IMG/VR virus record: IMGVR_UViG_3300011934_000017
Coordinates: 124,001 to 188,000 of that record
Length of the DNA: 64,000 bases
Reading direction: 5' to 3' (one strand)
Part shown: one piece after another, positions 2,500 through 64,000 of the stretch
Numbering within the stretch: the stretch's first letter is position 1
How the letters are laid out: each line of letters starts with the position of its first letter
Made by a program: the position numbers and the translations under genes
The notes under the pieces: generated by a model
The model's input: only the letters and a program-made list of their open reading frames with translations
What the model was told of the DNA's origin: nothing
Databases searched by the model: none

Positions 2500-3990
2500 T
2501 TATTCGTCGTCGTCTTCATCCGATACTGCCGCAGATTTTTTGTTGGTATTGGAAGCACGTTTGAAGTCTACCAAATACTCATAGCCCTTTCCAGTTGCTA
2601 CCTGTTTTCGTAGAAAGTTTCGGAACAACACAGGCTTTTTCATATTCAGTGCATCGCACAGTGTACGAATGTCGGAGCGATCACCTTCAATCATGGTTTT
2701 GAACTGCGTCCATGTCAGTGTGACACCGTCTAAAGGACTCTTGAAGTCTATGTGGTAAGTCTTTTCTTTGCCTGTAGACTTATCACGTTTCGTAACATCA
2801 AAACCACTCAGGAATTTGATCTTCTTACGGGTGCCTCCAACTTGACCTGTCATCTTCAGATATTGATACGCATCCCATGTCGCACAAAAGCCAGTAGCAT
2901 CACCTTCAGCATTCTCAACAACAAGGCGCATCGTGATGGTCTGGTTAGGAACACCCCCAAGCTTGTTCTTGTGGCTGCGAATCTTGATATAGCGGTACGT
3001 ATCATTACCGTCTGCAATAACAGACTCTTCTTCTTCCAACATACCTTTACCGTGCGGAATGCTGACAGAAGACATACGTAGGCGAACGTCTGAGTAAAAC
3101 TTCAGTGCGTCACCGCAAGGCTCAGTCTCGGAAGGACCATACATTGCCATAGGTACTTTACGAAGCTGATTAACGCCGAGTACCACGATACGCTTGGAGC
3201 GCATCATGCCTTTCACACGCTTTAGGCCGTCGGAGAACATACGTGCTTGAAGCGCCAGCGACTTATCGCCTTCTTCTTTCTCGTCTGCAATACCAGGAAG
3301 CATGGCAGGATAAGAGTCAGTAAGAACGATAGCCTGAATACCTCCATCTTCAGCAGGAACACGAAAGCGATTGGTCTTGGTGAAGTATTTCTTGTCGTAT
3401 AAACCTTTAAGCGCTTTCTGATTCTCTTTGGTGTTATCGTAAATGAAATACCATTTGCCGTTCATTCGCACTTTGTCAGGCAAGACTTTACCCATCTTAG
3501 ACAGGTAGTTAAAGAATTTCTCGCCTGTGTCAGGAGCGTAGTAACGAACACGTGGTGCTACTACCCATTCTCCTGTCACGTCATCACGAACACCGAAAAC
3601 TTTCTCTACATCGCCGCTAACACCCATAGAGTGCATGATGTTTTCAATGTAGTCAGCTTGCGAACTACCTTCATAGTCAAAGTAGCTTGCAAAGCCTTTG
3701 AAAGCTTTCTGACCCATGATAGACGCAAGAATGGTCATGGCTGTTGTAGACTTACAGGACTGCTCGCCGCCGAAGCATGTATACCAACCACCACCTAACA
3801 TGCCTCCAGCTAACGCAACATCTAGCGATAGCAGGCCGGTACTGAATCGAGGTTCGTCTTTATCAATAGCCATAGAAGAGAGTCGAAACTTCTTTTCCAT
3901 GCTATCAATTTCAGCATCAATATGGGAGTAGGGATTAAACGCAGGAACCTCAGCTTCTTCAACACTTGTGCTTTTCTTACGCTTTGCCAT
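2500..3990 (-). CDS. recA: RecA/UvsX-like recombinase
   Basis: STG..SLDVAL.GG, Walker A GGEQSCKST, LTDS, ALQARMFS, GVNQLR, GDALKFYSDVRLR. Confidence 0.93.
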   Translation of the reverse strand: MAKRKKSTSVEEAEVPAFNPYSHIDAEIDSMEKKFRLSSMAIDKDEPRFSTGLLSLDVALAGGMLGGGWYTCFGGEQSCKSTTAMTILASIMGQKAFKGFASYFDYEGSSQADYIENIMHSMGVSGDVEKVFGVRDDVTGEWVVAPRVRYYAPDTGEKFFNYLSKMGKVLPDKVRMNGKWYFIYDNTKENQKALKGLYDKKYFTKTNRFRVPAEDGGIQAIVLTDSYPAMLPGIADEKEEGDKSLALQARMFSDGLKRVKGMMRSKRIVVLGVNQLRKVPMAMYGPSETEPCGDALKFYSDVRLRMSSVSIPHGKGMLEEEESVIADGNDTYRYIKIRSHKNKLGGVPNQTITMRLVVENAEGDATGFCATWDAYQYLKMTGQVGGTRKKIKFLSGFDVTKRDKSTGKEKTYHIDFKSPLDGVTLTWTQFKTMIEGDRSDIRTLCDALNMKKPVLFRNFLRKQVATGKGYEYLVDFKRASNTNKKSAAVSDEDDDE

Positions 3991-4377: not shown

Positions 4378-5481
4378 TTATTCATCCCAGTCGTCTTCAT
4401 CATCATCAAAGGATACTTTCTTCTTCGATGATTTCTTTTTCTTTACAGGCTTTTTCTTCTTCTTCTTAGGTGCTGGCTCGTCTTCATCTTCATCGTCGTC
4501 CAGATCAACCTTCTTTTTCTTTACAGGCTTTTTCTTTTTCTTTACAGGCTTTTTCTTTTTCTTCTTAGGTGCTGGCTCGTCCTCGTCTTCATCTTCATCG
4601 TCGTCCAGATCAACCTTCTTTTTCTTCTTGGTTGACGCGGAAGAACCTAGATCAACATCGTCGTCCAAATCTTCATCCTCGTCATCACCGCCTTCAGACG
4701 TGGATTCGTCGCCAAGAATTTCCATGCGCTTGAAGTCTTCGGCAGCTTGCTTTTCAGACATACGACCTGCAATATCCAAAAGCTCTGGCGTTAGCTGCCA
4801 TACGAGGTACTCGCCTTCTTCATCGCTGAGTGGTGTGCGACCATCGACCTTGTCTGCACTGTACTTGTCAGAACCAGAAGCTTTCGGCTTGTACTTGATA
4901 TTCACGTCAACACCGTACTTCGGATGTGATATATCAAAAGCTTTCTTTTTACCTGTCTTCTTGTTCTTAACGATGTTGGTCTCACCGAGTTCTTGCATAC
5001 GGGAAACCATAGTATTGGTCAGACGGATAACGCGAACAGGAGTCCAAGACTTAGACTTGATATCTTTAAAGCCAGTCTTCTTTTCTTGCTTCGCCAATTC
5101 TGCTTTTCGAGCAGGTTCGTCTTCTTGTAGATCGCGGACGATAGCGTTCACAAGATAAAAGTGCTCGCTACGCATGGTTGCTTCTTGACCACCTTCGGTA
5201 GACAAGTCACAATACGGGCAATGCGCATCAAGCGGCTCTTCTTCGTTTTCTGGATTAAAGCTTACACAGAAACGCGGAATGTTAACCAGCTTCTTTTCTT
5301 TGCCTGCGTAAATCTTGATCCAGTGACGGCGAACAGGTAGAATGTCGGCCTCTAAGAAACGCAGTTGTACCCACTCGTCGGGATGATCGGTAAACTTATA
5401 GATATCTATAAGCTCTTCAAGACGCAACGAATCACGGTTGCCTGTCTTGGGTTTCATTTTACTAAAGCCTTTACCAGACAT
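4378..5481 (-). CDS. single-stranded DNA-binding protein, T4 gp32-like, with blocky acidic/basic tail
   Basis: RFL...RRHW, C...CPYCDL, YLVNAIV pattern as in gp32; lies next to recA; duplicated DDDEDEDEPAPKKKKKKPVKKKK tail. Confidence 0.7.
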   Translation of the reverse strand: MSGKGFSKMKPKTGNRDSLRLEELIDIYKFTDHPDEWVQLRFLEADILPVRRHWIKIYAGKEKKLVNIPRFCVSFNPENEEEPLDAHCPYCDLSTEGGQEATMRSEHFYLVNAIVRDLQEDEPARKAELAKQEKKTGFKDIKSKSWTPVRVIRLTNTMVSRMQELGETNIVKNKKTGKKKAFDISHPKYGVDVNIKYKPKASGSDKYSADKVDGRTPLSDEEGEYLVWQLTPELLDIAGRMSEKQAAEDFKRMEILGDESTSEGGDDEDEDLDDDVDLGSSASTKKKKKVDLDDDEDEDEDEPAPKKKKKKPVKKKKKPVKKKKVDLDDDEDEDEPAPKKKKKKPVKKKKSSKKKVSFDDDEDDWDE

Positions 5482-12921: not shown

Positions 12922-13314
12922 TTATTCGTCCCAGTCATCGTCATCGTCTTCATCTTCATCATCTTCATCATCTTCATCATCTTCATCATCTTCATCATCT
13001 TCATCTTCATCATCTTCATCGTCGTCGAGGTCTTCATCGTCGTCGAGGTCTTCGTCCTCGTCTTCGTCCTCGTCCTCTTCGTCAGCTTCATCTTCATCTT
13101 CATCTTCATCGTCATCGCCGAAGTCATCATCCTCTTCATCATCACCGGAATCATCTTCACCGTCTGGAACGGATTCGGCAACAGCGTCGGTAAGCGTGTC
13201 TAGCGTATAACCAGCAGCCTGGGCTTCGGACAATAGAGTAAGAATTGCGGAAGCAAGCAGTTCTTCCAAGTTCAGTTTTGGAGCTTTTGCTGCGGTTTTC
13301 TTTGACTTCGCCAT
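12922..13314 (-). CDS. highly acidic protein (poly-D/E C-terminal half)
   Basis: Basic N-terminus, short helix, long D/E tract built of 9-nt tandem repeats; ends DDDDWDE. Confidence 0.8.
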   Translation of the reverse strand: MAKSKKTAAKAPKLNLEELLASAILTLLSEAQAAGYTLDTLTDAVAESVPDGEDDSGDDEEDDDFGDDDEDEDEDEADEEDEDEDEDEDLDDDEDLDDDEDDEDEDDEDDEDDEDDEDDEDEDDDDDWDE

Positions 13315-13390: not shown

Positions 13391-14059
13391 TCAGAGGTCT
13401 TCGTCATCTAAGTCGTCGTCTTCTTCCTCGTCGTCGTCTTCATCTTCCTCGTCGTCGAGGTCTTCATCTTCCTCGTCGTCGAGGTCTTCATCTTCCTCGT
13501 CGTCCTCGTCCTCCTCTTCATCTTCGAGGTCTTCATCTTCTTCATCAAAATCTTCTTCTACAGGCTTTTTCTTCTTAGCCTTTCGTGAGGACTTTTCGTT
13601 ATCTTCTTCGTCCGCAAAGACTTCGATGTGGACGTTATCGTTTGAAAAGATTGTAGTAATCTCTCCAGTAACGGAATCTTTTACCGTCAAGGTACCTGTA
13701 GCAGCATCGCGGCGAACAAGACCTTTCACCGTGTACATAAGCTCAGACTTGATAAGGGTGATGCTTGACGGCTCACCTGGCTTACCGAAAACTTTGACAA
13801 CATCGCGGATTAAAAATGTTGAAATGCGAGTCTTTTTTGAGGCGTTAGTTTTCTTATGACGAAACACAACGCCTGTTTCATCGTAGGAGACTAGAAAACC
13901 ATTTAGCGTTACAGGTACGCGCATAGCATAGACGTTTACGGTATGTACCGCTTTCTTCGCGTCTAAGCCTACACCAGCTTTGATGCCGCGTAGACGTTTT
14001 GAAATCTTTTCAGACTGTGATAGGCGACCACGAGGTGCGCGTGTTGCTGACTTAGCCAT
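13391..14059 (-). CDS. beta-rich protein with acidic tail
   Basis: Basic N-terminus, globular middle, D/E tract ending DDLDDEDL. Confidence 0.8.
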   Translation of the reverse strand: MAKSATRAPRGRLSQSEKISKRLRGIKAGVGLDAKKAVHTVNVYAMRVPVTLNGFLVSYDETGVVFRHKKTNASKKTRISTFLIRDVVKVFGKPGEPSSITLIKSELMYTVKGLVRRDAATGTLTVKDSVTGEITTIFSNDNVHIEVFADEEDNEKSSRKAKKKKPVEEDFDEEDEDLEDEEEDEDDEEDEDLDDEEDEDLDDEEDEDDDEEEDDDLDDEDL

Positions 14060-15376: not shown

Positions 15377-16870
15377 TCACTCGGAAGTAATGATATACAC
15401 TGGAAGCTTCTGTTCTTTATTTACACTTCCCAGTTCTACAGGTCGTGCAATGATTCCAGTGACCTTTTGATCGGGCATACGTTCTGCAAACTTCTCAACG
15501 TATTTACAGTAGGCTTTTTCTGTAAGCGGACCTCCTTTCGTTCTAAGAACCGAGTAGTCGTCAAACAAATTGTCGTTGGTCACAGCAAAACCGTTCGATT
15601 GCAAATGTCGATTAACGTGCTGACCGACAGGTATAGGACGAACGTTACCGCGACTGCCGTAGTAAATGTCAGAAGCGACAAACCTGAAGTAGTTTTCAGG
15701 GCTACGAATGAACTGGTCAATGCGATACTTTGCATTGGCGTCCCGCAGCGAATCGAGGGACCTCTTGAGCTTTTCAATTTTGCTCTGAAGCAGAGGGACA
15801 GCTTTGCCTTGCTTGATTATCTCAGCATTCTTTTTGATAGAAGAGGCGGCAGCTTTAAGTTCGGCTGCCTCTTCGTAATTCTTTTTACGCTTTGCGCGGC
15901 TGTGTTTCTTGCGCGCCTCTTCAAACAGGTCTTTCAGACGTTCTAATTCGGAACCGTCTTTGATTCTTTTAATCTTCTCTTTCTTCTGGTCAATGTCATC
16001 CAATAGATCAACTACTTCAGGGCAGTCTACTATGGGTCTACGTTCTTCGTTCAGAGTACCTAGAAAATAATCGAACAAGGCAGAGACGGACTTAACTTCA
16101 GGTAGATGCGACTTGATGCTGTCTTTCATCGAGTCTGGAACAGTCAGTGTACCAGCCACAACAAAATAGTTTGCAGGACCAGAAAGCAATTCTGATACGT
16201 TACCGTGATAATCAGGATTGATCAGACGTTTGCCGTTAGAGCCAATGTAATTCGGTATGTCTAACTTGATAGCAACATCAAGACTAACGCGCTCACCGTC
16301 TAGGCCACCGATACGCACGTCATACAGGTAACTGTAGCTTCGCTTTTCGGTCTTGTGAATACGATAAACCACAAACATGCGCAGACCTGCGAGAAGTGGT
16401 GATATCAAATAACTGCCTTCAGGCACACCTCGAACAGGCTCTTTTTTGTACTGAGGTAACATCGAGGTATAGATATCATCCAACATCGCAGGATAAGCGT
16501 ATTCTTCAAGATTCGAAATGTGTTTTTTCAAATCACTCTGGCATTCTTCAAACTCAAGAGGACCAGAACCAAGTAGCGCGAAGTTTGCCCACGACATACC
16601 GTGAGCGTCGCTTTCTGGAACACCAAGACCTACAGAATACATCATGGACAGCGTGTACATGTCATCAGTATTACCTGACGTGGCACCTTTAGCAATCTTT
16701 TCGACTACCGTCTTCGCAAGATTAGGCATAATATTTGCGGTCTCTTCATCGGTTAAGTAAAGAGGGAAGTCCAAGATAGAGCCAGGATACGGAGTATGAA
16801 CAACGCAGCGCTCGACCATGAACAAACGGTAAAAAAGATCGCTCAAAGGCTCATGTAACTGATCCATCAT
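15377..16870 (-). CDS. SEL1-repeat plus degenerate NAD-ligase adenylation-like domain with coiled-coil/UVR insert
   Basis: MYTLSMMYSVGLGVPESDAHGMSW (SEL1-like); SPLLAGLRMFVVY, VVAGTL, FVASD, LQSNGF, VTGIIAR in ligase-motif order; NYEEAAELK (UVR-like). Confidence 0.45.
   Translation of the reverse strand: MMDQLHEPLSDLFYRLFMVERCVVHTPYPGSILDFPLYLTDEETANIMPNLAKTVVEKIAKGATSGNTDDMYTLSMMYSVGLGVPESDAHGMSWANFALLGSGPLEFEECQSDLKKHISNLEEYAYPAMLDDIYTSMLPQYKKEPVRGVPEGSYLISPLLAGLRMFVVYRIHKTEKRSYSYLYDVRIGGLDGERVSLDVAIKLDIPNYIGSNGKRLINPDYHGNVSELLSGPANYFVVAGTLTVPDSMKDSIKSHLPEVKSVSALFDYFLGTLNEERRPIVDCPEVVDLLDDIDQKKEKIKRIKDGSELERLKDLFEEARKKHSRAKRKKNYEEAAELKAAASSIKKNAEIIKQGKAVPLLQSKIEKLKRSLDSLRDANAKYRIDQFIRSPENYFRFVASDIYYGSRGNVRPIPVGQHVNRHLQSNGFAVTNDNLFDDYSVLRTKGGPLTEKAYCKYVEKFAERMPDQKVTGIIARPVELGSVNKEQKLPVYIITSE
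15418..15425 (-). promoter_or_regulatory. TGTAAATA motif
   Basis: At the end of the upstream gene, about 50 nt before the 15366 start. Confidence 0.45.
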
Positions 16871-17234
16871 TTTTCTCCACCTGTTTTCGTATTCCGTTTA
16901 CATTGTCTGCAAACTCCAGAATAACATTAATCTCTTCGTCTTCTACTTGGTTATTTACAGCATTGAGAAACAGCTTTCTTTGCATGACACAAATGGCCTC
17001 GTCCGTAATGTGCGTACGGAACGCAACGAGGTCTTCATTAGCATGGATAAAAACATCATTCACCTGCTCTATGAATTTAGGTGAAAGATTGCGTTCACTC
17101 TTTTCAGTCGAGACAAATTCAGGAGAAAACAACACAGGTAAGGGATTGCCTGCTTGTGTTGTACCAGACTCTGATTCCATTATAGCAAAATAACGCTGTA
17201 GAAAAGTTCTTACACTAGGTGTACTCATTTTCAA
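16851..17234 (-). CDS. hypothetical protein
   Basis: 127-aa ORF in operon. Confidence 0.65.
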   Translation of the reverse strand: MKMSTPSVRTFLQRYFAIMESESGTTQAGNPLPVLFSPEFVSTEKSERNLSPKFIEQVNDVFIHANEDLVAFRTHITDEAICVMQRKLFLNAVNNQVEDEEINVILEFADNVNGIRKQVEKNDGSVT

Positions 17235-26155: not shown

Positions 26156-27715
26156 CTACAATGTAAGACCCGACTTCACTTTGTCCGGATTCTTCAGATA
26201 AGCCGCAACACGCTTCTGTGTGTCTTTAGCTGCGCGAGCACCAGGGTCTTTCAAGTCTTTAGTCAGACCTTCAATTTCTTTTCGTAAGGCTGCAATCTTT
26301 GTTTTCAGATCGGCTGCTTCCAACTTAGCCAGCTTACGCACCTGACGATTCAGAATGATAGTGGCGTCTGCTTCGGGCATCTTCATTGCCTTGGCCAGTG
26401 TCGCGTCAGGATTATCTGCTACCAGCACTTTAGGCAGCACCTTCAACAACTTCTCCATATTCTCAACAGCGAACAGGTAGACCTCTTGTAAGTGAAGCTC
26501 TTTCTTGGCTTTCTCAAGCAGGTTCTCAACCAACCGTAGCTCCAGAGCAATGCGATACTTGATCCAAGCACTAAAGAACTTGTCGTATCCAAGATAGTGG
26601 AAAGCATTGCGGTCATCTTCTTTTCGAACCGTGATACCAAGACGATAGCTTACTTTACTGGTAGTCTGCTTTTCTACCTTCTCTACAATATCGTAGAAGT
26701 CTTCAGTGCCGAGACCTTTCTGGCACTCAATGATAAACAAGGCGCCGTACGGGCCACTGCCTTTAGACTTCTTGCCTTGCTTGCTGTAACACTTGCGAAC
26801 ACCGTCAATGTTGCTAATCTTTTCCAGTGTCTTATCAATCTGGACAGTAGATGACAAACCAGAAGGAACGAAAGAACGGATGTATAGGGTCTTCTTATCG
26901 TAGTCCTCTTCAAACAGCGGAGCATACGTAACACTGCCTTTGCCTGTCTTTACCATTTCCTCCATGTCGGCTCTTTCAATAGACGCATCGCATCCCCAAG
27001 CGTGTTGCACCTCTAGCATAGATGCTAACTTCTTGGAGCTAATCGTCTTGCCTTTGAGCAGTGCAATAACTACCTTGGCTACGCTGCGAAACGAGAAGCT
27101 TGGGTTACCTGCGCGAACGCCGTATGCTGGCGCTGGTATGTTACCATTAAACAATGCATACGGTAGTAGTGATGGAAGAAACAGGGGAATCGTATCGTCA
27201 CCACTGAAGTTGGGAACCTTCGGCACAACCTCTAAGTAGTCACGGTCTAGCATGAAGCTATTCGTAAACTTACTCATACGTGCTTCAGTGTAACGCTGAG
27301 CAGCAGGAGGATTGATCGGTGTACCCCAGTTACCTTGACCGTCTACCGCAGGTGGCATTGTGTTTGCAATCGTAACCATCGCACCGTAAGCAGCGCTATC
27401 ACCATGCGGGTGATATTTACCGATGGTGTCACCAACAGTACGTGCAGACTTTTTATACGAGCTGGACGGACGCAAGTTAAGACCAGCTAATGACCAAAGT
27501 AATGCGCGGTGCACAGGCTTCAGACCGTCACGATAATCGGGTACCGCACGATCTTCTACAACGTAGGCACCGTAGATGCTAAGTGCTTCGGCTGTGAACT
27601 TGTCTAAGCCTTGGTCCCGTAATGTGGTGTCAGTGATACCAGGCATCGGGAAAATAGACAGGTCATCAGTCTTTGCAACTTGAGTGGTCTTTGCTTTGCG
27701 TGTTTGCTTTACCAT
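26156..27715 (-). CDS. gyrA: type IIA topoisomerase subunit A (GyrA/ParC-like), no C-terminal pinwheel
   Basis: DGLKPVHR, KKSARTVGDTIGKYHPHGD, GQGNWG, AAQRYTEARMS (catalytic Tyr). Confidence 0.95.
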   Translation of the reverse strand: MVKQTRKAKTTQVAKTDDLSIFPMPGITDTTLRDQGLDKFTAEALSIYGAYVVEDRAVPDYRDGLKPVHRALLWSLAGLNLRPSSSYKKSARTVGDTIGKYHPHGDSAAYGAMVTIANTMPPAVDGQGNWGTPINPPAAQRYTEARMSKFTNSFMLDRDYLEVVPKVPNFSGDDTIPLFLPSLLPYALFNGNIPAPAYGVRAGNPSFSFRSVAKVVIALLKGKTISSKKLASMLEVQHAWGCDASIERADMEEMVKTGKGSVTYAPLFEEDYDKKTLYIRSFVPSGLSSTVQIDKTLEKISNIDGVRKCYSKQGKKSKGSGPYGALFIIECQKGLGTEDFYDIVEKVEKQTTSKVSYRLGITVRKEDDRNAFHYLGYDKFFSAWIKYRIALELRLVENLLEKAKKELHLQEVYLFAVENMEKLLKVLPKVLVADNPDATLAKAMKMPEADATIILNRQVRKLAKLEAADLKTKIAALRKEIEGLTKDLKDPGARAAKDTQKRVAAYLKNPDKVKSGLTL

Positions 27716-27726
27716 AACAACCCCTT

Positions 27727-29772
27727 TTAATCTTTAAGACCGAGTAAGCGACGACGATAAACAGCATCTTCAGCCACAACACCGCGGAAGAAACGCTCCT
27801 GCTCTTTGTCAGCAAACGGATTGATTCGAATCATCTTACGTGTACCAGGATTGAATGCGATCGGTTCAAGGTATGTTTCATCAACTTCACCCCAACCTTT
27901 GATACGTACAATATCTTTATCTTTCACTGAGGCTGGCGCTTGTGCTCGTGCTTCTGCAAACGTCATACCGCCGTAAAGTTTGTTATTCTTTACAACTGCG
28001 TAAAGCGGAGCTTCGATACACCACACGCGGCCTTCTTTGAACATATCTGGCAACAGGCGATAGATAGCAGCTAGATACAGGACAGCAATGTGACCACCAT
28101 CTGGATCAGGGTCAACCAAAAGAATGACGTTCGCTGTGCGCAACTTTGCCGTGGACAGCGTTGGGTTCTCTGCTTTAGGGTCAAGTGTCTTTACATCAGC
28201 ACCAAGGGCCGTAAGCATCTGCTGAATTTCAGAGTGTGCCAGCACTTTAGACAACGGTGCTTTGAGAGCATTCAGCGGCTTACCACCAGCGGGAAGCACC
28301 TCTTGGTAGTCAGAGTTGCGAGCATCAATCGCGGTTCCAGCCGCGCTGTCACCCTCCACAATATAGAGTTCACGTTCACTGGGCTTGGCACGATCAGCGA
28401 CAGCAAGACCTGCAGGAAGCGCAGAGCCTTTAGTCTTCTTTTTCACATCAGCCATAGAACGCACAACAGCCGCAAGATCGGTACGACCTTTACCCATAGC
28501 CTGTGCGCGTTTAACGATGGCTTTAGCGGTCTTCTTATTTTTATCAAAATACTCTTCAATCGCAGGAAGCAAAGCATCGTAAACTTCACGGTCTACTTTC
28601 GACGCCAGCTTATCTTTTACCTGAGACGTATACTGTGCCCCATGCATTCGAAAGTCAAACAGACCTGTAAGGCCAATCAGCAGGTCAGAGCCTTTGAAGC
28701 CGAGCGCACGACCTTTACCTTTGGTAGTAGGTGTGAAGGGCTTGATTGCTTGTACGACAGCATCCGTAAAGCCTTTAACGTGCCAACCACCGTCGGCCGT
28801 GGGACTTGTATTGACAAAGCTCAAAAAGTTGTCGATATCAGGATGATCTGCCCATGTCACTGCGCAGCTAATGTAGTCGGACTTGAATGTGAATGGTTTG
28901 CCAAGCGGCGTAAGCTCTCGGCTATCACACATGGTCTTGGGAATCCATGAAAGGTCTTTCTTATTCTGAAAGACAGCACTCTTAACTTTTTCTTTGCGCA
29001 CGACTGTAAGGCGAATGACCAGACCTGGATTAAGATTAGCCATGTACTTCAACCAATCAGCAACTTTCTTTGCGTCAGGTTCTGCCTTAACAAAATTCTT
29101 GGGCAGCTTCTTTCCACGTCGTGCGGATTCTGACACTACATCTTGGTCAAGGCGACACGCGATAATAGTGCCGTACTTCTGGACTTTCTTGTCTTTCAAA
29201 AGCGCCATAACATCAGCGTCAACTTTCTTTACTTTGACAGGATGATCGCCTTTGGTGGTAATCTCACCTTGCTCGAAGCTTTGATAGACCAGATTGCCGT
29301 TGTAAGTAGACCATGCGCGTAGACTTGAACTGATAGCATTCACGGCAGCTACACCTATACCGTGTGTGCCCGCACTGGTCTTGTAGGCTTTGTCGTTGAA
29401 CTTACCGCCTGCGTGTGTGCGTGTCAGTGCAGCGGTCATGATTGTAATCTTTTCACCGCTTTTCAATTTCTTAAAGTCGGTTGGAATACCACCTGCACCA
29501 TCGGCAACAACTAACAGGTCATTATCATAGTCGATGACCACTTCGATCAGATTGTTACGACCGCTGATATGTTCGTCGTAGGAGTTGTCAACTTTTTCTT
29601 TCAGAGCACGGCGAGCCATTTCTTCACCAAGCTCACCTAGGTACATGGTAGGGTTGGCGCGGATACCTGAAAGTCCCTCCATTATTTCGAAGCCTTCTTG
29701 TGAAGCTGACTTCTTTTTAGTTTTCGAAGAGCCTGTCACGTCTACCTCTTGAACACCTTTCTTTCTGGCCAT
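27727..29772 (-). CDS. gyrB: type IIA topoisomerase subunit B (GyrB/ParE-like)
   Basis: EKVDNSYDE, DGAGGIP, HAGGKF, GTHGIGV (GHKL ATPase); EGDSAAG, DPDPDGGHI (TOPRIM); KGWGE. Confidence 0.95.
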   Translation of the reverse strand: MARKKGVQEVDVTGSSKTKKKSASQEGFEIMEGLSGIRANPTMYLGELGEEMARRALKEKVDNSYDEHISGRNNLIEVVIDYDNDLLVVADGAGGIPTDFKKLKSGEKITIMTAALTRTHAGGKFNDKAYKTSAGTHGIGVAAVNAISSSLRAWSTYNGNLVYQSFEQGEITTKGDHPVKVKKVDADVMALLKDKKVQKYGTIIACRLDQDVVSESARRGKKLPKNFVKAEPDAKKVADWLKYMANLNPGLVIRLTVVRKEKVKSAVFQNKKDLSWIPKTMCDSRELTPLGKPFTFKSDYISCAVTWADHPDIDNFLSFVNTSPTADGGWHVKGFTDAVVQAIKPFTPTTKGKGRALGFKGSDLLIGLTGLFDFRMHGAQYTSQVKDKLASKVDREVYDALLPAIEEYFDKNKKTAKAIVKRAQAMGKGRTDLAAVVRSMADVKKKTKGSALPAGLAVADRAKPSERELYIVEGDSAAGTAIDARNSDYQEVLPAGGKPLNALKAPLSKVLAHSEIQQMLTALGADVKTLDPKAENPTLSTAKLRTANVILLVDPDPDGGHIAVLYLAAIYRLLPDMFKEGRVWCIEAPLYAVVKNNKLYGGMTFAEARAQAPASVKDKDIVRIKGWGEVDETYLEPIAFNPGTRKMIRINPFADKEQERFFRGVVAEDAVYRRRLLGLKD

Positions 29773-29802
29773 AATACAATTCCTGATATCGATTGTCTTC
29801 TA

Positions 29803-29810
29803 TATTTACA
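29803..29810 (-). promoter_or_regulatory. TGTAAATA motif
   Basis: Between terminator and gyrB start. Confidence 0.6.
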
Positions 29811-29824
29811 CTAATCTCAGAAAC

Positions 29825-29855
29825 AAAAAGACCTCACAATTAAGGAGGTCTTTTT
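29825..29855. terminator. intrinsic terminator
   Basis: AAAAAGACCTC-ACAATTAAG-GAGGTCTTTTT. Confidence 0.85.
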
Positions 29856-45982: not shown

Positions 45983-46963
45983 ATGTCGATTACCGTAGAA
46001 AAAGACGATTATATAATCGTTCGTTACCGCAACAAGTCCGTTCTTTGTTTTGTGTTGAATGGAAAAAGCTGTAGAGGCGTTATAGAAAAAACGCTTCATA
46101 CCGATGATCCTGAGAATATCACTTACGAAAGTGAAAACGTTCTCTGTAATCTGGGTCCCAACCCACAAAATGGCAAAATCTACGGCATTGATGTTACACC
46201 GTATCGAAGCACCATAGATACAAAGACGTTTGGCCCCATTCATCTATTCCGTGACGTTCCTAAAAAGGAGCTTAAAGCGCTTCGTTCTGCAATGAAGACG
46301 GTGCACAAGAAATTTGAGAAAGAGGCGAGCACTGCCTTTCTACCTTTGTATCAAATGCACATTCTACCGAAGAAGGGCAAGTATGCAGGGTCATATCTAG
46401 CCAAGTCTAAAGGCAGTGAAGTATGGGACCAGATTAAACTGCATCCCGACACATTCGTTGATCCTATCTATAACGAATACCTGATTGCCCACGAGTTTGC
46501 ACACGGCCTCTGGTACCGCTGTGTGCCTATGGATATCCGAGCTAAGTGGATCAATCTATATCAAAAGCGTCGTAAGCTAAACTCTATTAATCAAAAGCAT
46601 CTGGACGAGCTTTACCAAGAGCTTATGCGTTATGAAGGTGGTATTCGTGATTACATCAAAGAAGTAGCCGACGATGAAGAAAAACTGGTAATCAAGGAAG
46701 TGTTGAACTACTTCAAGCGTTACCAGAGTATGTCTTCAGATGATGTGGAGCTCTTGTTGTTACATGATAGTGGCAAGCTTGCTGATATGTGGCCGAGCCG
46801 TGCTCTACTATCAGAGACCAGTCCCGACATTTCCACCTATTCTATGGTCAAGGTAGAAGAATTTTTTGCAGAGGCTGTGGCTTATCATTTTACAGGAAGA
46901 ACGTTACCTAAAGATGTTCAGAAAGGCATTTCTATCACCTTCAAAAAGTGCAAACAAGCTTAA
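45983..46963 (+). CDS. zincin-like metallopeptidase
   Basis: AHEFAHG (HExxH) and distal EEFFAEA. Confidence 0.75.
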   Translation: MSITVEKDDYIIVRYRNKSVLCFVLNGKSCRGVIEKTLHTDDPENITYESENVLCNLGPNPQNGKIYGIDVTPYRSTIDTKTFGPIHLFRDVPKKELKALRSAMKTVHKKFEKEASTAFLPLYQMHILPKKGKYAGSYLAKSKGSEVWDQIKLHPDTFVDPIYNEYLIAHEFAHGLWYRCVPMDIRAKWINLYQKRRKLNSINQKHLDELYQELMRYEGGIRDYIKEVADDEEKLVIKEVLNYFKRYQSMSSDDVELLLLHDSGKLADMWPSRALLSETSPDISTYSMVKVEEFFAEAVAYHFTGRTLPKDVQKGISITFKKCKQA

Positions 46964-47009
46964 TTCTAGCAGGGAAGCTTTTTAGCTTCCCTTTTTTAGG
47001 TTCAAATAG

Positions 47010-47017
47010 TGTAAATA
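47010..47017 (+). promoter_or_regulatory. TGTAAATA motif
   Basis: Intergenic, 35 nt before ATG 47053. Confidence 0.55.
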
Positions 47018-47052
47018 TTACTCAATATAACGCTATACTTAAGGCAATACTC

Positions 47053-47766
47053 ATGAACCTAACTAAAATCATGGAAAACAATTCAAGGCTGTTCTCTCAC
47101 GTTATAATCCCTAGACGAAGCGCTCCTACAAAAATTCGTCCCATTTTACCTCTCAAGATTAAGTTTCTAACAAAACCTAATTCTAAGCAAATCCTTTATT
47201 CTGGTTTGTACTTTTGCATTCCAGATAATCTTCTGTTTTACGAAATGGACTTACTAGAAAAGGCAATTATAAGCAGGTTGCCTGACATTTCTCAACCTTT
47301 GAACATACCGTATAGTCTGGTTACGAAACTAGATCCGTCATTTTATGGATACATAAATGGATTTCACGTCGAAGACAATAAGGCTTATATAGAATCTGCG
47401 AATTGTCTTTTTGTTAATCCTGACTCACCTTTATTACCTACGTCGCTCGAAGACCCTGCTTATGGTGTACTGCTTCCCCTTTATGAGGCGTCTGCTTGCT
47501 TATCTTATCTGTTAGCTTCCATATCCCTATATAGAGCTGGTGACTTTGATACTCTACCTACGATGCTAGAGAAGACTTGGAGTAAAGTAGAAAAAGCTTC
47601 AGGTGTAAATATGACTAAAGCATCTTTCATCGACGGTATGTTTAGAATCGGTCCTGACTTATTTGGTAACTCTATAGAAGATGATTGTGTGGCTCCCGGA
47701 CTTGCGCATCTTCTAGGTAGCTTTTTGTCTTTAGATACTGACGTGTCGAAACATTTGGAGTGGTAA
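47053..47766 (+). CDS. hypothetical protein (start trimmed)
   Basis: The track ORF's GTG start overlaps the upstream gene; first ATG is at 47053. Confidence 0.65.
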   Translation: MNLTKIMENNSRLFSHVIIPRRSAPTKIRPILPLKIKFLTKPNSKQILYSGLYFCIPDNLLFYEMDLLEKAIISRLPDISQPLNIPYSLVTKLDPSFYGYINGFHVEDNKAYIESANCLFVNPDSPLLPTSLEDPAYGVLLPLYEASACLSYLLASISLYRAGDFDTLPTMLEKTWSKVEKASGVNMTKASFIDGMFRIGPDLFGNSIEDDCVAPGLAHLLGSFLSLDTDVSKHLEW

Positions 47767-47768
47767 TC

Positions 47769-48914
47769 ATGGCTAAGAAAGCAAAAGCAGCACCAATTGA
47801 GACAACTACTAGCGGTGCACTGGCTGTAAAATACAGACCTGCAAAACTGAAAGACTTGTCTGGTCAACCACATATCACTACTCAGCTAAAAGGCATGTTC
47901 AAGTCTCGAAAAGTACCTGGCGCTTTTTTGATTGAAGGTCAAACAGGCGGCGGTAAGACGACTCTAGCGCGTATCATTCATAGGTACTTGAACTGCGAGA
48001 AAGGTACGGCTTGCGGTAAATGTGAGTCATGCCGTATTGACCCTAAGAACCATCCTGATCTTGTTGCTATAAACGCAGGTACTGATGGTAAAGTAGACGA
48101 CATTCGAAAGCTTGTCAAAGGTGCGCGTGTTGCTCCTTACCACAACAAACGTATTATCCTGATCGACGAGGCACATAAGCTAACAGGTGCTGCGGCAGAA
48201 GCTTTGCTGGTACCTTTGGAAGAACCAAGTCGTGATACCATCTGGATTTTGTGTACAACGAATCCTGAAAAGATGCTACCTACGATGATCAATCGTTGTG
48301 TGCATTTCACAATGAAGCCAGTCGAGCACCAAGATATCGTTAGTCGCCTTACTTTCATTGCAGAGAAAGAGAAAGTAGATTTAAGCGGGGAAGACGGTCA
48401 AGAAGCTTTGAGCCTGATCGCTGACTTTTCCAACGGCAGTATGCGTCATGCTGTAGCGCTTCTGGAGTCTGTGCTTTATGCTGTCGCTGGCGGTGCAGAT
48501 ATCAGTAACAAAGAGGTACTGTCGGCGTTTATTCAAAACTCCGAAGTTGATTTAGACAAGGCTGCCGTCAGTCTAGTCGCTGCACTAATGAATAATGATC
48601 TTAAAGGTGCTATTCGCTTTGTACGTAAAGCAGGTAACACACGCGGTCTTGTAAGCAAGTCACGTTGGTTAATTGACTACTGTATAGGCGCTAAGACTAA
48701 GACAGCCAAGTTCAAGCCGTACTCCGGTCGATTGTTTGAGAAGCTGGTCTCCGACAAAGGTATTGACGTTCGATTGGATGCTTTGCTGTTGCTTCAGATG
48801 ACCATTGTCGATGCTGAAATGAAGATGAATAGCACGTCCATCGATGAATCCGTTATTCTCCAAACAGCTATCGCCAAATACGCCTTCGATAATGTTGAGG
48901 AAGAGGAAGAGTAA
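47769..48914 (+). CDS. dnaX: clamp-loader AAA+ subunit, DNA Pol III gamma/tau-like
   Basis: KYRP...GQ, GGGKTT.AR, CGKCESC, IDEAH.L, LEEP, TTNP...NRC. Confidence 0.93.
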   Translation: MAKKAKAAPIETTTSGALAVKYRPAKLKDLSGQPHITTQLKGMFKSRKVPGAFLIEGQTGGGKTTLARIIHRYLNCEKGTACGKCESCRIDPKNHPDLVAINAGTDGKVDDIRKLVKGARVAPYHNKRIILIDEAHKLTGAAAEALLVPLEEPSRDTIWILCTTNPEKMLPTMINRCVHFTMKPVEHQDIVSRLTFIAEKEKVDLSGEDGQEALSLIADFSNGSMRHAVALLESVLYAVAGGADISNKEVLSAFIQNSEVDLDKAAVSLVAALMNNDLKGAIRFVRKAGNTRGLVSKSRWLIDYCIGAKTKTAKFKPYSGRLFEKLVSDKGIDVRLDALLLLQMTIVDAEMKMNSTSIDESVILQTAIAKYAFDNVEEEEE

Positions 48915-56282: not shown

Positions 56283-57470
56283 ATGCTACCCAATTTCATG
56301 AAAAAATTGCGGTCTTTCCGCGATGTTTTGAACTTCATTCGCACGGCTCCTGCTGCTGCTATAATGCGTCTTTTTACTTCGCGTAAAAGCAAATATGATG
56401 AACTAATGCGCAAGGTAGATGGATTCGTTACTATCCTTGAGGCCAGCGACAACGTAACTACTCTCGATGTGTCTGGAGGACCTGTAAAGAAAGGCGGAAA
56501 GACTGTAAGCTTTAAAGACCGTGCTGCCGTACCTATCGACAACTTCAAGGTACCGAATCGGAGTAAGCTTGCCGAAGACGTTCAACTGTTTGAAGGATTG
56601 GAGCAGTCCCTCGAAGAGCTTGAAGCAATGATGCTTGGTATCAGAAACCGAAAAGATCCTGCATCCCGCAAGTTTATGAAAGAAATGAAAGAATATCACG
56701 TTAACATGACCAAACAACGGGATAAACTTCACGATGCTATGGATGACCTGTCCAATAAGCATCTTCCGCCTGAAATGAAAAAGCTGATTGCGGCACTGCT
56801 TCGACACGTCGATGCCACTATTCCTAAGGATTCTTACGAAGGCATGAGTCGTGACGTGTATGTTACCTCTCACAATTCTTTAGGTAACGACAAAGACAAC
56901 GAGCCTATAGAGTTTACCTGTTATCTGTATATAGAAGGTCTGATGGAAGATGCTTTTAGAACAAAAGAGTTGATTTTGGTACTTACAGGTACTGTTCATG
57001 AAGACGTATCGAAAGCAGGTTCTTCCTTCTATCTGACATTCAACCTCACTGCTCTGACACGTTTTGCTAATCCAGGTGCTTTCAAAGAAGGCAAAGATTT
57101 AGCAGGTACCAATCTATCTAGTCTGATCAAGTCTATGGAGAAAGAAGCTACTCGCCTTATTTCTATGAACTCTATGATGCCGCATATTGGACGTAGAAAG
57201 CTGAAAGCAACACCTCAGCAGATTCAATACAGCGGCATTATGGACGTTGACGGTGTACTGGACGTTGGTGTTGAAGAGGACAATGTTGTTATCAAAGTCA
57301 TCGATATGGACGACGATGTTATCAACGAAGATCTGTGGCCCGAAATCATCGTCTATCTGCGCAAGGTACTTCGTGCGCCTCGCAAGTCCTCTTTCGTATA
57401 CACAATAGAGAAAGCAAAAGGCGTTAAGTATATTCGGGTATCCAGCGTAAACAACCCAGCGAGTGTTTAA
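56283..57470 (+). CDS. probable virion protein
   Basis: ATG 1 nt after the upstream stop; context inference. Confidence 0.7.
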   Translation: MLPNFMKKLRSFRDVLNFIRTAPAAAIMRLFTSRKSKYDELMRKVDGFVTILEASDNVTTLDVSGGPVKKGGKTVSFKDRAAVPIDNFKVPNRSKLAEDVQLFEGLEQSLEELEAMMLGIRNRKDPASRKFMKEMKEYHVNMTKQRDKLHDAMDDLSNKHLPPEMKKLIAALLRHVDATIPKDSYEGMSRDVYVTSHNSLGNDKDNEPIEFTCYLYIEGLMEDAFRTKELILVLTGTVHEDVSKAGSSFYLTFNLTALTRFANPGAFKEGKDLAGTNLSSLIKSMEKEATRLISMNSMMPHIGRRKLKATPQQIQYSGIMDVDGVLDVGVEEDNVVIKVIDMDDDVINEDLWPEIIVYLRKVLRAPRKSSFVYTIEKAKGVKYIRVSSVNNPASV

Positions 57471-59742: not shown

Positions 59743-61077
59743 ATGATTATTCATCACGATAACACTGTCCTCGCTGCTGCCAATAAGGATCCGCGCAATT
59801 ATGGTTGGTACGAACTCACGGGCGCAAAAGCTACCTTCGAACATGCTCACAAGACACATGAGCTAATTCTATCTCGCGGTGAGAAATATGGCCTTAAGGA
59901 GTACCGAGGTAAAGTATTTCTAGTAGACGGCAGTGATTTGAGTATTCAATTCAGTCTTACACTGGATGAAGCTACTAAGCTTGTTAAGAAGTCTAAGCCT
60001 TGGTCAGGAAAGATCAGTCGCTACAAAGTAAATGCTGGCGCTCCTAAGCTGTCTGGACCTAAAGCTTCTGGACCTAAAACGATTGTTACAACGCCTAGTT
60101 CTGCTCCCAGCGATTCGCTAAAAGGCTTAGACATTCTAAAAGCATTAGGCAAAAGTAAACCAGAAAGTGACAAAGAAAACGGTATTTCGTTTAAGCGCGT
60201 TGTCGCTTCTGGTACTCCATCTACTGTAATGCGTAAGCTCACTAAGATGGGTTTGGCTAAAGCGCAAAAACATAATGAGGAGCCTTTTGTTGAGTGCGAT
60301 GACGGTGTTCTGCTCGTCAAACGTCACGAGTTGAAAGAATCGCTTATCATGTTCTTCAAGCCTACGACATGGAAAAAGTATAAGAACCTAGAAGCACAGC
60401 CTGTTAAGACTCCGAAGACGCCTAAGACTCCTAAAGAGCCCGTGTCCGCTCGTCCTCCAAAGCCACCTAAGACTACAACTACTAATTCAGGTCAAAAGGT
60501 ACAGCACACACCTCGTACGGAAGCTGTCAAACTGATGGATTCTGTTAACGGAGCACCTCTAAGTGCAACGTCTATGCCTGTAGAGCTAAAAGACCCTGAA
60601 GTTTATGCAGCGTCCTTGTACGGTCGTGAAGTTAGCACAGGGCGTCGAACATCTCCTAGATCCGTGACTACTGTAGGTTATGCTCACATCAAAGGCAAAT
60701 TCTGTCTTGTCGGAGTCTCCACCAGTATGAAAGGTGTCAATATTGTAGGCTTTCCCCTCACTGATGTAGAGAAACATGCTACAAAACGACTTCAGGATCC
60801 TCAGCTTTCTTATAAAGATTTCTTGTATATGAGGAATTTAGCTTCAAATGAAATAAACAACATTCATGAGCGCAGAGCCAACACCAAAGAGGAATCCCAC
60901 GAGAAGTTTGAACGTATGAATCCGCAACCGGGTATGCGAGCCACTATTAAGTTTTCCAACGGAACGCAGTCTACGACTATCGTAGATGTACGACGTTCTG
61001 ACGCTACTATTGGAATTAAGGGAAGTGGCAAGAAGCTTCGTTGGATTCCAATGAGCATGGTAAAGTTTGTTGAATAA
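59743..61077 (+). CDS. probable virion protein, shared N-terminal domain paralog 1
   Basis: VLAAANKDPRNYGWY...GEKYGLK..RG..F..D...GKI; PKTPK linker. Confidence 0.75.
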   Translation: MIIHHDNTVLAAANKDPRNYGWYELTGAKATFEHAHKTHELILSRGEKYGLKEYRGKVFLVDGSDLSIQFSLTLDEATKLVKKSKPWSGKISRYKVNAGAPKLSGPKASGPKTIVTTPSSAPSDSLKGLDILKALGKSKPESDKENGISFKRVVASGTPSTVMRKLTKMGLAKAQKHNEEPFVECDDGVLLVKRHELKESLIMFFKPTTWKKYKNLEAQPVKTPKTPKTPKEPVSARPPKPPKTTTTNSGQKVQHTPRTEAVKLMDSVNGAPLSATSMPVELKDPEVYAASLYGREVSTGRRTSPRSVTTVGYAHIKGKFCLVGVSTSMKGVNIVGFPLTDVEKHATKRLQDPQLSYKDFLYMRNLASNEINNIHERRANTKEESHEKFERMNPQPGMRATIKFSNGTQSTTIVDVRRSDATIGIKGSGKKLRWIPMSMVKFVE

Positions 61078-61092
61078 CTCTGGGATTCCATT

Positions 61093-62721
61093 ATGATAAC
61101 GCAAATGTATAGAGAGGTTCTTTCTGCTTCTAATCGAGATCCTCTACAGTATGATTGGTACAAGGTAGTTTCTGACACAAAGACCAAGATTGATCTTGGC
61201 ACTGTCGTCATGGAGCTATCTAAGGGTGAGAAGTTTGGCATCAAGAAGACACGCGGCTCATTCTTCATTATTGACGAAGACAACCTCGCTAAGCAGTATA
61301 AGGTAGAAGAACGTCACGTCAACCGTATTTTGAAACGTTCGAATTCTTTCCGAGGTAAAATCGACGGAATTAAGGTGGGCGGAGCTTCGAGTTCTGCTAA
61401 AGAGCCTCGTGCTCCGAAGCAACCCAAAGAGCCTGTAACACCTAAAGCACCTAGTGCCCCGAAGCGACCTAAAGAGTCTGCAACACCTAAAGCACCTAGA
61501 GAGACTTCAGGTATAATACGAAGAAGGCCCAAACAGCCTAAACAACCTGAATCTTCTGATGGACCTAAGGCACCTAAACAACCTAACGCACCGAAGCAGC
61601 CTCGTGCTCCTAAGCAGCCCAAAGAACCTAAGCAGCCCAAAGAACCTAAGTCGTCTACTATAACACGTAGAGCACCTAAAGAGCCTGTTATCGACGACGA
61701 GCTGGATACGGACATTGATGACGAGCTGGACGAAGACTGGGAAGAAGAAGACCTCGATCTTGAAGGGGATGAGGACTTAGAGGATGAGGACTTAGAGGAT
61801 GAGGACTTAGAGGAAACTGTTAACGCAAAGCCTGATATCAACGACGATGACGACGCTTTGTTAGCAGCTTTTCCTAAAGCTAGAGGGCGTATAAGAAAGA
61901 AAACTCCTTATCAGAAAATGTTAGAAGAGGACGCAGCAGAAGAACAAGCGGCCCGTGAGGTTAGGAAAGAAGAAGTCAAGCCGTCTCCTGTATATGATGC
62001 TCCCGCACCTGTGAAGCGCGATATATCGAAGATTAAAGTTCCTTCTGTTTCCGAACTTCCACAACCTATTGACGATGCCGATTTTAAAAGGCTCGCAAAG
62101 GCCGCGCAAGCCCTTTCTATTGCATTGTCTCGTAAAGAAAATTCTTTGCCGAAAGAGTCTCAAGAAGTTTTAACTTGGCTCAACGCTTTGACTTCCAATA
62201 TCTCTCCGCTTGAAGAGGAATTTGCAGTCAAATTCCCTAAGAGAAGCATGTGGCCTTCCATCGAAGAGTTTAGAAACTTCCTTAACGACTGTCTGCAAAA
62301 CGCCTTAAATCGCACAGTGTCTTTGGCTGTGGGTAACATTGAAAACGAAGTTGACCTTCTTTTGGGCGAGTATGCTGAGCATAAATTCCAAGAAAGCGCT
62401 TGGCGAGCCAACATCACCAAGACAGAGTACCATATCGAAGATGTGCTAAGCAATCTAGGCTTTGAACAGAAAGACGACTCTGCCGTTCTAACTTTGGATT
62501 CGTCCTCTTTTATTCAAGCAGCGTATAACCCAGAAGGCAAAGGCATCAAATTAGAGGTTCAGAAACACAGCTTGCAGCAGGTAGAGACTCAACCCGATGA
62601 TGAAGGTCTTGTTAAGAAAACCGAGAAGATTTTACCTGACGGTCCAGCTAAAAAGCTTCTAATTCCTTTCTCAAAAACTGCTAAAGCCAATATAGAGCGC
62701 CTAGTAAACGCTGTTCGGTAA
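61093..62721 (+). CDS. probable virion protein, shared N-terminal domain paralog 2, with PKQP repeats and acidic tract
   Basis: VLSASNRDPLQYDWY...GEKFGIK..RG..F..D...GKI; (DEDLE)3 encoded by a 15-nt tandem repeat at 61768-61812. Confidence 0.75.
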   Translation: MITQMYREVLSASNRDPLQYDWYKVVSDTKTKIDLGTVVMELSKGEKFGIKKTRGSFFIIDEDNLAKQYKVEERHVNRILKRSNSFRGKIDGIKVGGASSSAKEPRAPKQPKEPVTPKAPSAPKRPKESATPKAPRETSGIIRRRPKQPKQPESSDGPKAPKQPNAPKQPRAPKQPKEPKQPKEPKSSTITRRAPKEPVIDDELDTDIDDELDEDWEEEDLDLEGDEDLEDEDLEDEDLEETVNAKPDINDDDDALLAAFPKARGRIRKKTPYQKMLEEDAAEEQAAREVRKEEVKPSPVYDAPAPVKRDISKIKVPSVSELPQPIDDADFKRLAKAAQALSIALSRKENSLPKESQEVLTWLNALTSNISPLEEEFAVKFPKRSMWPSIEEFRNFLNDCLQNALNRTVSLAVGNIENEVDLLLGEYAEHKFQESAWRANITKTEYHIEDVLSNLGFEQKDDSAVLTLDSSSFIQAAYNPEGKGIKLEVQKHSLQQVETQPDDEGLVKKTEKILPDGPAKKLLIPFSKTAKANIERLVNAVR

Positions 62722-62814: not shown

Positions 62815-63693
62815 ATGAGTAACCACTCACGTTCCGTTGTGAACACCATGGTATCCGAACTCAATCGCAGCAAGAAGCCGCGTATCAATATTGTTGATGT
62901 TCAGCGTACCGCAAACGAAGGCTACGCTCGAATCACCGCCTCCGTTACCCACACTACTGCCAGCCGAAACGACCACGATCTGGTCATGCAGGCTATCAGT
63001 GATGTTGCTGGCGCTAAAGTTCGTCCAGTCGAAGGGTCTTTTCACGCACTGGCCTCCAGCGATGTTGGTGACACCATTACAGGTATCGTTACGTCAAATC
63101 CTGAGACTGTTGCATACGATGAAGCCGACTCGCAATTCAAGGCTGTATCAAGCAACATGTTTATGGATGAAGAAGAACAGCTTTGGGCACTTCGTACTAC
63201 CGAAGCTGGTGATCTGCTGGTCAAGAGTCGCGGCAAAGAAGACGCTGATATCATTGCAGACCTAATGACCAGCCTTTCAAGCTCCGATGTTGGCACTCTG
63301 GCGTTCGAAGCAACCGCTTCTGCTAACCGTGACAAGGGTGTACGTAACAGTGTAGAAGGCGGTGACTTTCTTTCATTCGTTAATCCGCAGACTGAGCAAG
63401 TTGAGTTCGGTGCTGTTGTTGCATCCGTGTTAGATTATAACGGCTCTGAAATGAATCAACTGGTTGTCCAATCTTCGAACGGATCCTCTCCTGTTCAGAT
63501 TGACCGTGCTTTGGCTCTTGGTGTGTTCGACGACGTAGACTACGATGATTCTGGTCTGATCGACGAAAATAGTGTCGAGGCTTCTGCTCACACGTTGGAC
63601 TTCATTGCGTCTTACTACCAGAAAGTCTTTCAGCGCGATCCTTCGTACTTCGATAAGTTCATGGAACGTTGGATGAACCACAAGTTCTGCTAA
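62815..63693 (+). CDS. probable structural (head-associated) protein
   Basis: SD TAGGAG, highly biased codons, own terminator; function is inference. Confidence 0.75.
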   Translation: MSNHSRSVVNTMVSELNRSKKPRINIVDVQRTANEGYARITASVTHTTASRNDHDLVMQAISDVAGAKVRPVEGSFHALASSDVGDTITGIVTSNPETVAYDEADSQFKAVSSNMFMDEEEQLWALRTTEAGDLLVKSRGKEDADIIADLMTSLSSSDVGTLAFEATASANRDKGVRNSVEGGDFLSFVNPQTEQVEFGAVVASVLDYNGSEMNQLVVQSSNGSSPVQIDRALALGVFDDVDYDDSGLIDENSVEASAHTLDFIASYYQKVFQRDPSYFDKFMERWMNHKFC

Positions 63694-63700
63694 GTCTACT

Positions 63701-63727
63701 GGGGGAACTTTTCGTTCCCCCTCTTTT
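63701..63727 (+). terminator. intrinsic terminator
   Basis: GGGGGAAC-TTTTC-GTTCCCCC-TCTTTT. Confidence 0.75.
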
Positions 63728-63742
63728 GGAGGTTAGTCGCCT

Positions 63743-64000
63743 ATGGCTCGCAAAAAAGGAGCAACTGAGATAGATGTATCAGGCAGTGGGTTTATTGATG
63801 ATCGAGGTCGTCATGTTAACACTGATATACCTGAAGACGCGCGCCGTTCTAGCTCTGGTAAATCCAACTCGAAGCAACGCTTAAAGGATAAGCAAAGCAA
63901 GGCGGCTAAACGCAAAAAGGAGATTGAAGAGGAGAACGAGCAAGCTAAAGCACCTTCACAGCGTAAGAAGAAAAAGAAGAAAGAAGACACGTATTCCTTA
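63743..64000 (+). CDS. 5' part of a gene running off the window (not in ORF track)
   Basis: SD GGAGGT; MARKKGATEIDVSGSGFIDDRGRHV...; open to window end. Confidence 0.8.
   Translation, partial: MARKKGATEIDVSGSGFIDDRGRHVNTDIPEDARRSSSGKSNSKQRLKDKQSKAAKRKKEIEEENEQAKAPSQRKKKKKKEDTYSL

Follow-up and report, generated by a model that had tools for sequence, protein, structure and literature searches.

The N-terminal peptide shared by the topoisomerase II large subunit ("GyrB") and an otherwise unrelated 318-aa protein (p318) of a jumbo phage related to Pseudomonas phage PaBG is one copy of a motif of roughly nine residues, G-x-x-E-[IV]-D-V-[ST]-G, located in lysine-rich tails or loops, which PaBG-like jumbo phages keep on three proteins and move among DNA enzymes, most likely, as inferred from sequence comparison, to bring them to one common partner. 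The DNA analysed (the window) is a stretch of 64,000 nucleotides, positions 124001-188000 of the IMG/VR virus record IMGVR_UViG_3300011934_000017 (G000 below), which is 220,237 bp in size, has direct terminal repeats and a G+C content of 44%. Its closest cultured relative is PaBG, with 70% identity to the PaBG "DNA topoisomerase II large subunit", and it belongs with Lu11, NCTB, and the Dickeya and Erwinia jumbo phages (PMC7412058). Unless stated otherwise, coordinates are those of the window.

The sharing of a 15-residue N-terminal peptide by the two proteins, pointed out in the first-pass annotation, is confirmed. The GyrB gene (27727-29772, minus strand, 681 aa) starts with MARKKGVQEVDVTGS at 29772-29728, with the motif core GVQEVDVTGS at 29728-29757, while the open reading frame at 63743 (plus strand) starts with MARKKGATEIDVSGS at 63743-63787, with the core GATEIDVSGS at 63758-63787. 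Eleven of the 15 residues are identical, against only 29 of 45 nucleotides, within the 8-residue core 1 of the 4 identical residues uses the same codon, and the similarity stops after residue 15. A six-frame fuzzy search of the whole genome finds the 15-mer only at these two places, and among 27,730 pairs of N-termini this pair scores highest (BLOSUM 53 against 37 for the next), whereas shuffled N-termini reach at most 34, or 41 with the first five residues held fixed. The 9-residue core taken alone is, however, not significant within this one genome (28 against a null maximum of 34), and the decisive evidence is its conservation in relatives. Both genes are preceded by a G+C-rich, terminator-like hairpin with a T run followed by their own ribosome-binding region (29790-29850 and 63694-63742), but the two upstream regions share no sequence, so the genes are expressed from unrelated contexts.

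The gene of p318 runs past the window end (63743-64000 in the window, genome 187743-188699, plus strand) and belongs to the family phrog_23026 of unknown function. Thirty-three p318 homologues, down to about 33% identity, keep an N-terminus composed of basic residues followed by G-[IV]-x-E-[IV]-D-V-S-G-G and then by D-[DE]-R-G-R-x-x-N-x-D-I-P (PaBG has RRIDVSG); p318 carries the motif in all lineages examined, and the motif is ancestral in this family. The rest of the conserved N-terminal region (GFIDDRGRHVNTDIPEDARR, 63788-63847) is specific to p318 and is not shared with the other carriers. In the AlphaFold2 model (one alignment row, taken from a GenBank record, was left out of the first structure prediction) residues 1-15 lie in a segment with pLDDT below 50, predicted to be disordered, followed by a lysine-rich disordered/helical region and a confident C-terminal three-helix bundle. 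The bundle gives no functional clue: it has no meaningful PDB match (best E 0.24), and its viral matches at E<=0.001 are uncharacterised proteins of related jumbo phages, JA11, PaBG, phiRSL1, Motura, and two further entries.

The 681-aa GyrB is a phage-type topoisomerase II large subunit (for the type see PMC7824862), with Pfam PF00204 and PF01751 assigned to the protein itself and PF02518 to close relatives, in agreement with the presence of GHKL ATPase, transducer, and Toprim domains in one chain, and with the gene of the medium, GyrA-like subunit (26156-27715, minus strand) directly downstream. A lysine-rich linker (SKTKKKSASQEGF, 29689-29727, minus strand) separates the motif from the conserved start of the GHKL ATPase domain, and it varies in length and sequence among orthologues while the motif is kept. 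In GyrB the motif was acquired secondarily. A clade of nine orthologues with 100/100 support contains this phage, and eight of the nine have G-V-x-E-[VI]-D-V-[TS] inserted between MAKK and the conserved KKKSASQEGF, one of the eight being degenerate, while the ninth has lost the insert. Outside that clade the extension is lysine-rich but lacks the core, as in PaBG (MAKEKIKKGKKSASQEGF) and in the related genomes G002, G004, G005, and G008. The one exception is P0058, a GyrB orthologue from the PaBG-like clade, which carries DRTIDVSGDD, the variant of its own clade; the GyrB tree thus needs at least two gains and one loss. In the closest relative, G001 (IMGVR_UViG_3300020473_000013), an HNH homing-endonuclease ORF of 355 aa (15783-16850, minus strand, of locus L033) is inserted at the 5' end of the GyrB gene and a 35-aa remnant of the displaced 5' end (16911-17018, minus strand) lies upstream; both 5' versions carry the motif.

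Further carriers were found by six-frame scans of five complete genomes followed by comparison of orthologues. The 274-aa protein p279 (phrog_17701), encoded just outside the window (genome 120702-121526, minus strand; L130:1706-2527:-), ends with KKGGIKHFDVS, and most of its 48 homologues end in the motif after a lysine-rich stretch, including those in all eight genomes in which the lineage variants were compared. p279 is annotated as "DNA topoisomerase" or "topoisomerase 4 subunit A" in PHROGs and in the PaBG record, but it is modelled as a zinc-ribbon region, helices, a small SH3/Tudor-like barrel, and a disordered tail (pLDDT below 50 for most of the tail, residues 241-267 and 271-274), with only generic structural matches (Z at most 6.5) and no PDB sequence hit, so there is no structural or sequence support for a topoisomerase. 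The third constant carrier in the lineages examined, p411 (56283-57470, plus strand, 395 aa from the conserved Met, function unknown), encoded two genes upstream of the head-tail connector gene, has the motif in a lysine-flanked internal loop (NVTTLDVSGG, 56451-56480); the G001 orthologue has DVTEIDVTGS, that of Lu11 VIEVRGG, and that of JA11 AIELSDI. The GyrA-like subunit has a basic N-terminal tail without the core in this genome, but carries the motif in its N-terminal region in the relative G005 (NRGDIEIDVSEAQ). The RecA/UvsX-like recombinase (2500-3990, minus strand) likewise has only a basic tail here, while in PaBG (GDVEIDVST) and in the relative G002 (VAVIDVSGD) its N-terminal extension carries the motif. 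The zinc metallopeptidase (phrog_17197; 45983-46963, plus strand) has no N-terminal extension here, but in G002 and PaBG it has a lysine-rich extension with the motif. The annotated start of the PaBG zinc endopeptidase probably lies too far downstream, since an in-frame GTG with a Shine-Dalgarno-like GAGGG 8 bases upstream (KF147891, 130461-130571, upstream of PaBG_00182) adds a 37-residue lysine-rich extension carrying the motif and matching the ATG-started G002 orthologue. Finally, phrog_21298 carries the motif in an acidic loop in PaBG, G002, G005, the relative G011, and Lu11.

A scoring matrix built only from p318 tags finds 11 hits of at least 15.6 bits outside p318 in five genomes, against 1 in reversed sequences, and seven of the 11 lie within about 45 residues of a protein end; the p411 copy scores 23.6 bits with this matrix. 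Several candidates were not accepted. The N-terminal INIVDVQ of p292 (62815-63693) looked like a further copy but is not conserved in orthologues, and the sequences KVAEGVEK in GyrB of Lu11 and G011 and AVEGGDLV in RecA of JA11 are suggestive only and were not counted.

The motif differs between lineages (DVSG, VSGD, VRG in Lu11, and ELSD in Dickeya/Erwinia phages), but the carriers within one genome share the same form. In G000, p318 has ATEIDVSGS, p279 IKHFDVS at its C-terminal end, p411 VTTLDVSGG, and GyrB VQEVDVTGS. G002 has IDVSGD in five proteins—RIDVSGD in both p318 and p279, VIDVSGD in RecA, KIDVSGD in the peptidase, and LDVSGD in phrog_21298—with a weaker EKIDINS in the p411 family. 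In G011, p318 has FDVSGGS, p279 VNVSGGN, and phrog_21298 LDVSGGR. In Lu11 the serine is replaced by arginine in all three constant carriers (ISVRGGDDD in p318, LTVRGDEGEDE in p279, and IEVRGGSDD in p411), while JA11 and Y3 have AISLDD[FI]G in p318, PIELSDY and IVELGDLDD, respectively, in p279, and AIELSDI and TIELADI in the p411 family. Across eight genomes the identity between tags of different families is 0.487 within a genome against 0.375 between genomes, a difference reached by 0 of 5000 permutations, or by 10 of 5000 with one genome per lineage, although the tags were aligned by hand and related genomes are not independent samples. The codons differ among copies within a genome, so recent copying of DNA does not explain the concordance.

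The peptide is thus short, lies in segments predicted to be disordered, is better conserved than its flanks in the GyrB, p318, and p279 alignments, occurs at either protein end or in loops, has been gained and lost on unrelated proteins, and changes in concert within a lineage. This is the signature of a short linear docking motif, with the core G-[VI]-x-E-[IV]-D-V-[ST]-G in this lineage, co-evolving with one receptor. The motif itself, its carriers, its conservation, its gains and losses, and its concerted variants are established by the comparisons, while the binding, the existence of a single receptor, and the destination of the carriers are inferred. In this view the alternation of hydrophobic and acidic residues suggests binding as an added beta-strand, and the basic flanks would contact DNA or an acidic surface, so that the carriers would be brought together at one place. 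As most carriers act on DNA (topoisomerase II, RecA, and the lysine-rich p318 and p279), a DNA-bound phage hub, i.e., a replication/recombination or DNA-organising centre, is considered the most likely place, and this explanation as a whole is favoured with moderate confidence only. The monomer models of p318 and p279 do not dock their own tags, and the prediction of a complex of GyrB residues 1-24 with p279 1-240, SSB 1-330, and p318 170-318 returned a score of 0.01, which counts neither for nor against binding. DNA polymerases lack the motif in the scans and no sliding clamp is detectable with five Pfam clamp families, so on present evidence the classical replisome hub is not the receptor.

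The proposal of the first-pass annotation, that the peptide is a short docking or sorting tag recruiting both proteins to one partner or site, such as a replication/packaging hub or virion loading, is partly supported. The conservation is at the protein level, as had been claimed, and the absence of the motif from orthologues, named beforehand as a ground for rejection, was not observed, since it is conserved in orthologues of both proteins and occurs on further ones. However, the functional unit is not the 15-mer, as MARKK is only a generic lysine-rich flank; the motif is not only N-terminal; it is ancestral in p318 and secondary in GyrB, which lacks it in PaBG and other relatives; and the other basic N-terminal tails that had been listed (RecA, DnaX, and GyrA) are lysine-rich extensions without the core in this genome, although RecA and the GyrA-like subunit carry it in other lineages. 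The partner or site to which it leads is not shown, and both a replication hub and virion loading remain compatible with the data.

The main rival, considered less likely, is a virion-loading signal which, like the T4 capsid targeting sequence, would direct its carriers into the prohead or virion, so that p318, p279, p411, and in some lineages topoisomerase II, RecA, or the peptidase would be packaged and delivered with the DNA. It is favoured by the location of p318 and p411 in a conserved block with the head-tail connector gene and by the fact that in PaBG the giant helicase encoded just downstream (gp202) and gp191 encoded just upstream are virion proteins, several virion proteins being proteolytically processed (PMC7412058), and T4 shows that unrelated proteins can share a short conserved targeting peptide (PMC3012670). 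On the other hand, the motif is C-terminal in p279 and internal in p411, the G000 counterparts of gp202 and gp191 start without it, no hit in a basic context fell on either protein in PaBG, and the major capsid protein has no such site. None of the tagged PaBG proteins (gp113, the RecA gp116, gp182, and gp198) is among the 14 identified virion bands, which is weak evidence, because only Coomassie-visible bands were analysed; a search for virion proteomics found only this PaBG gel-band table, the Dickeya phage paper containing no mass spectrometry. An unlikely but more novel variant of the sorting idea is that the peptide with its basic flanks (a basic stretch, then phi-D-V-S-G, then a basic stretch) would admit DNA enzymes, p318, and p279 into a so far unrecognised compartment, condensate, or DNA-bound body built by PaBG-like jumbo phages, as a phage counterpart of a nuclear localisation signal with lineage-specific variants matched to its receptor.

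A protease recognition site or degron, by which a phage or host protease would trim the lysine-rich tails or destroy the carriers at a set time, is improbable. Concerted change across unrelated substrates is also what co-evolution of a protease with its sites would give, PaBG virion proteins are processed, and terminal positions suit degrons, but in many p279 proteins the chain ends right at the motif (DVS-stop), leaving nothing to cut off, the processed major capsid protein lacks the motif, and no N-terminal sequencing data exist to back this reading. A sliding-clamp-binding motif is still less probable. Placement at either protein end, basic flanks, and gain and loss among DNA enzymes are typical of such motifs, and a clamp loader is encoded (47760-48914, phrog_5846), but five Pfam clamp families (PF00712, PF02768, PF09116, PF02916, and PF00705) give no match in the genome, no DNA polymerase was hit in the motif scans, the sequence does not fit the QL[SD]LF or PIP consensus, and p411 and p318 are not obvious replisome clients. 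The absence of any function, with the similarity arising by chance, by compositional convergence in lysine-rich N-termini (23 of 236 ORFs have basic ones), or as a leftover of recent DNA copying at a GyrB 5' end that does get exchanged, as the homing endonuclease in G001 indicates, is contradicted by the conservation in dozens of orthologues of three families while the flanks drift, by independent gain on five enzyme families (counting the two topoisomerase II subunits separately), by the differing codons, and by the concerted variants.

Shared address or docking peptides are already known, whereas the three positions in the chain, the hopping between subunits and enzymes, and the lineage variants are unusual; a limited literature search yielded no description of this peptide, nor was it mentioned in the parts consulted of the PaBG paper (PMC7412058) and of a comparative survey of jumbo phages (PMC7824862). 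[quoted passage not shown] It is, however, strictly N-terminal, and it is removed by the prohead protease, whereas the present motif is also C-terminal and internal, sits in lysine-rich tails, is carried mainly by DNA enzymes not shown to be in virions, and is not similar in sequence. Clamp-binding peptides (the eukaryotic/archaeal PIP box, the bacterial QL[SD]LF, and the C-terminal tails of T4 gp43, gp33, and gp55) are short motifs at either end of many DNA enzymes, often with basic flanks, gained and lost quickly and bound by one hub, but here no clamp gene is detectable, the polymerases lack the motif, and the consensus is different. Judged by its positions in the chain, by the lack of a match to the Pfam clamp families in the genome, and by the lack of the motif on the polymerases, the peptide is a member of neither of the two. 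Encapsulin cargo-loading peptides are short N- or C-terminal peptides that load unrelated enzymes into an HK97-fold shell; their consensus is different, phage heads are filled with DNA, and there is no evidence that the present carriers are inside the capsid. The TonB box of outer-membrane receptors and colicins, an acidic/hydrophobic strand-forming peptide ([DE]-T-x-x-V-[ST]-[AG]) in a disordered N-terminal region which binds by beta-strand addition, gives a structural precedent for how E-[IV]-D-V-[ST]-G could dock, although it acts in the periplasm in an unrelated system, the present carriers are cytoplasmic enzymes, and the likeness is in pattern only. Chimalliviruses sort DNA enzymes such as RecA-like proteins and topoisomerases to the phage nucleus, but no simple linear import signal is known to be established for them, and PaBG-like phages are a separate group that has not been reported to build a chimallin nucleus.

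If the peptide is a docking label, it gives a direct experimental handle on how a large, poorly understood group of jumbo phages, comprising PaBG, Lu11, the Dickeya and Erwinia phages, and many uncultured aquatic relatives, organises its DNA enzymes, since one 9-residue bait should pull out the receptor, the same peptide fused to a reporter should show where the carriers go, and the concerted variants offer a natural specificity swap. Different lineages tag different subunits of the same enzyme, or RecA instead of topoisomerase, which in this view shows that recruitment is rewired often. A docking role would also assign a first functional feature to three conserved proteins of unknown function (phrog_23026, phrog_17701, and the p411 family).

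A second shared terminal peptide is present in the window: the SSB (4378-5481, minus strand) ends with FDDDEDDWDE, and a 130-aa protein (12922-13314, minus strand) ends in a long poly-Asp/Glu run followed by the same DDWDE, resembling an acidic SSB tip. A 222-aa neighbour (13391-14059, minus strand) also has a poly-acidic tail, and these acidic tails could be counterparts of the lysine-rich ones. The 272-codon ORF upstream of the clamp-loader gene and overlapping its start (46948-47766, plus strand) has no PHROG hit and low recognition in the protein atlas, so it may not be a real gene; PaBG has two small genes at this position. Two adjacent paralogous ORFs of 444 and 542 aa (59743-61077 and 61093-62721, both plus strand), sharing an N-terminal N[KR]DPxxYxWY domain followed by proline/lysine-rich repeats, are inserted between the connector gene and p292 relative to PaBG and JA11, and further copies of the N-terminal domain lie at genome 113677-114564 (minus strand) and 198923-200854 (plus strand).
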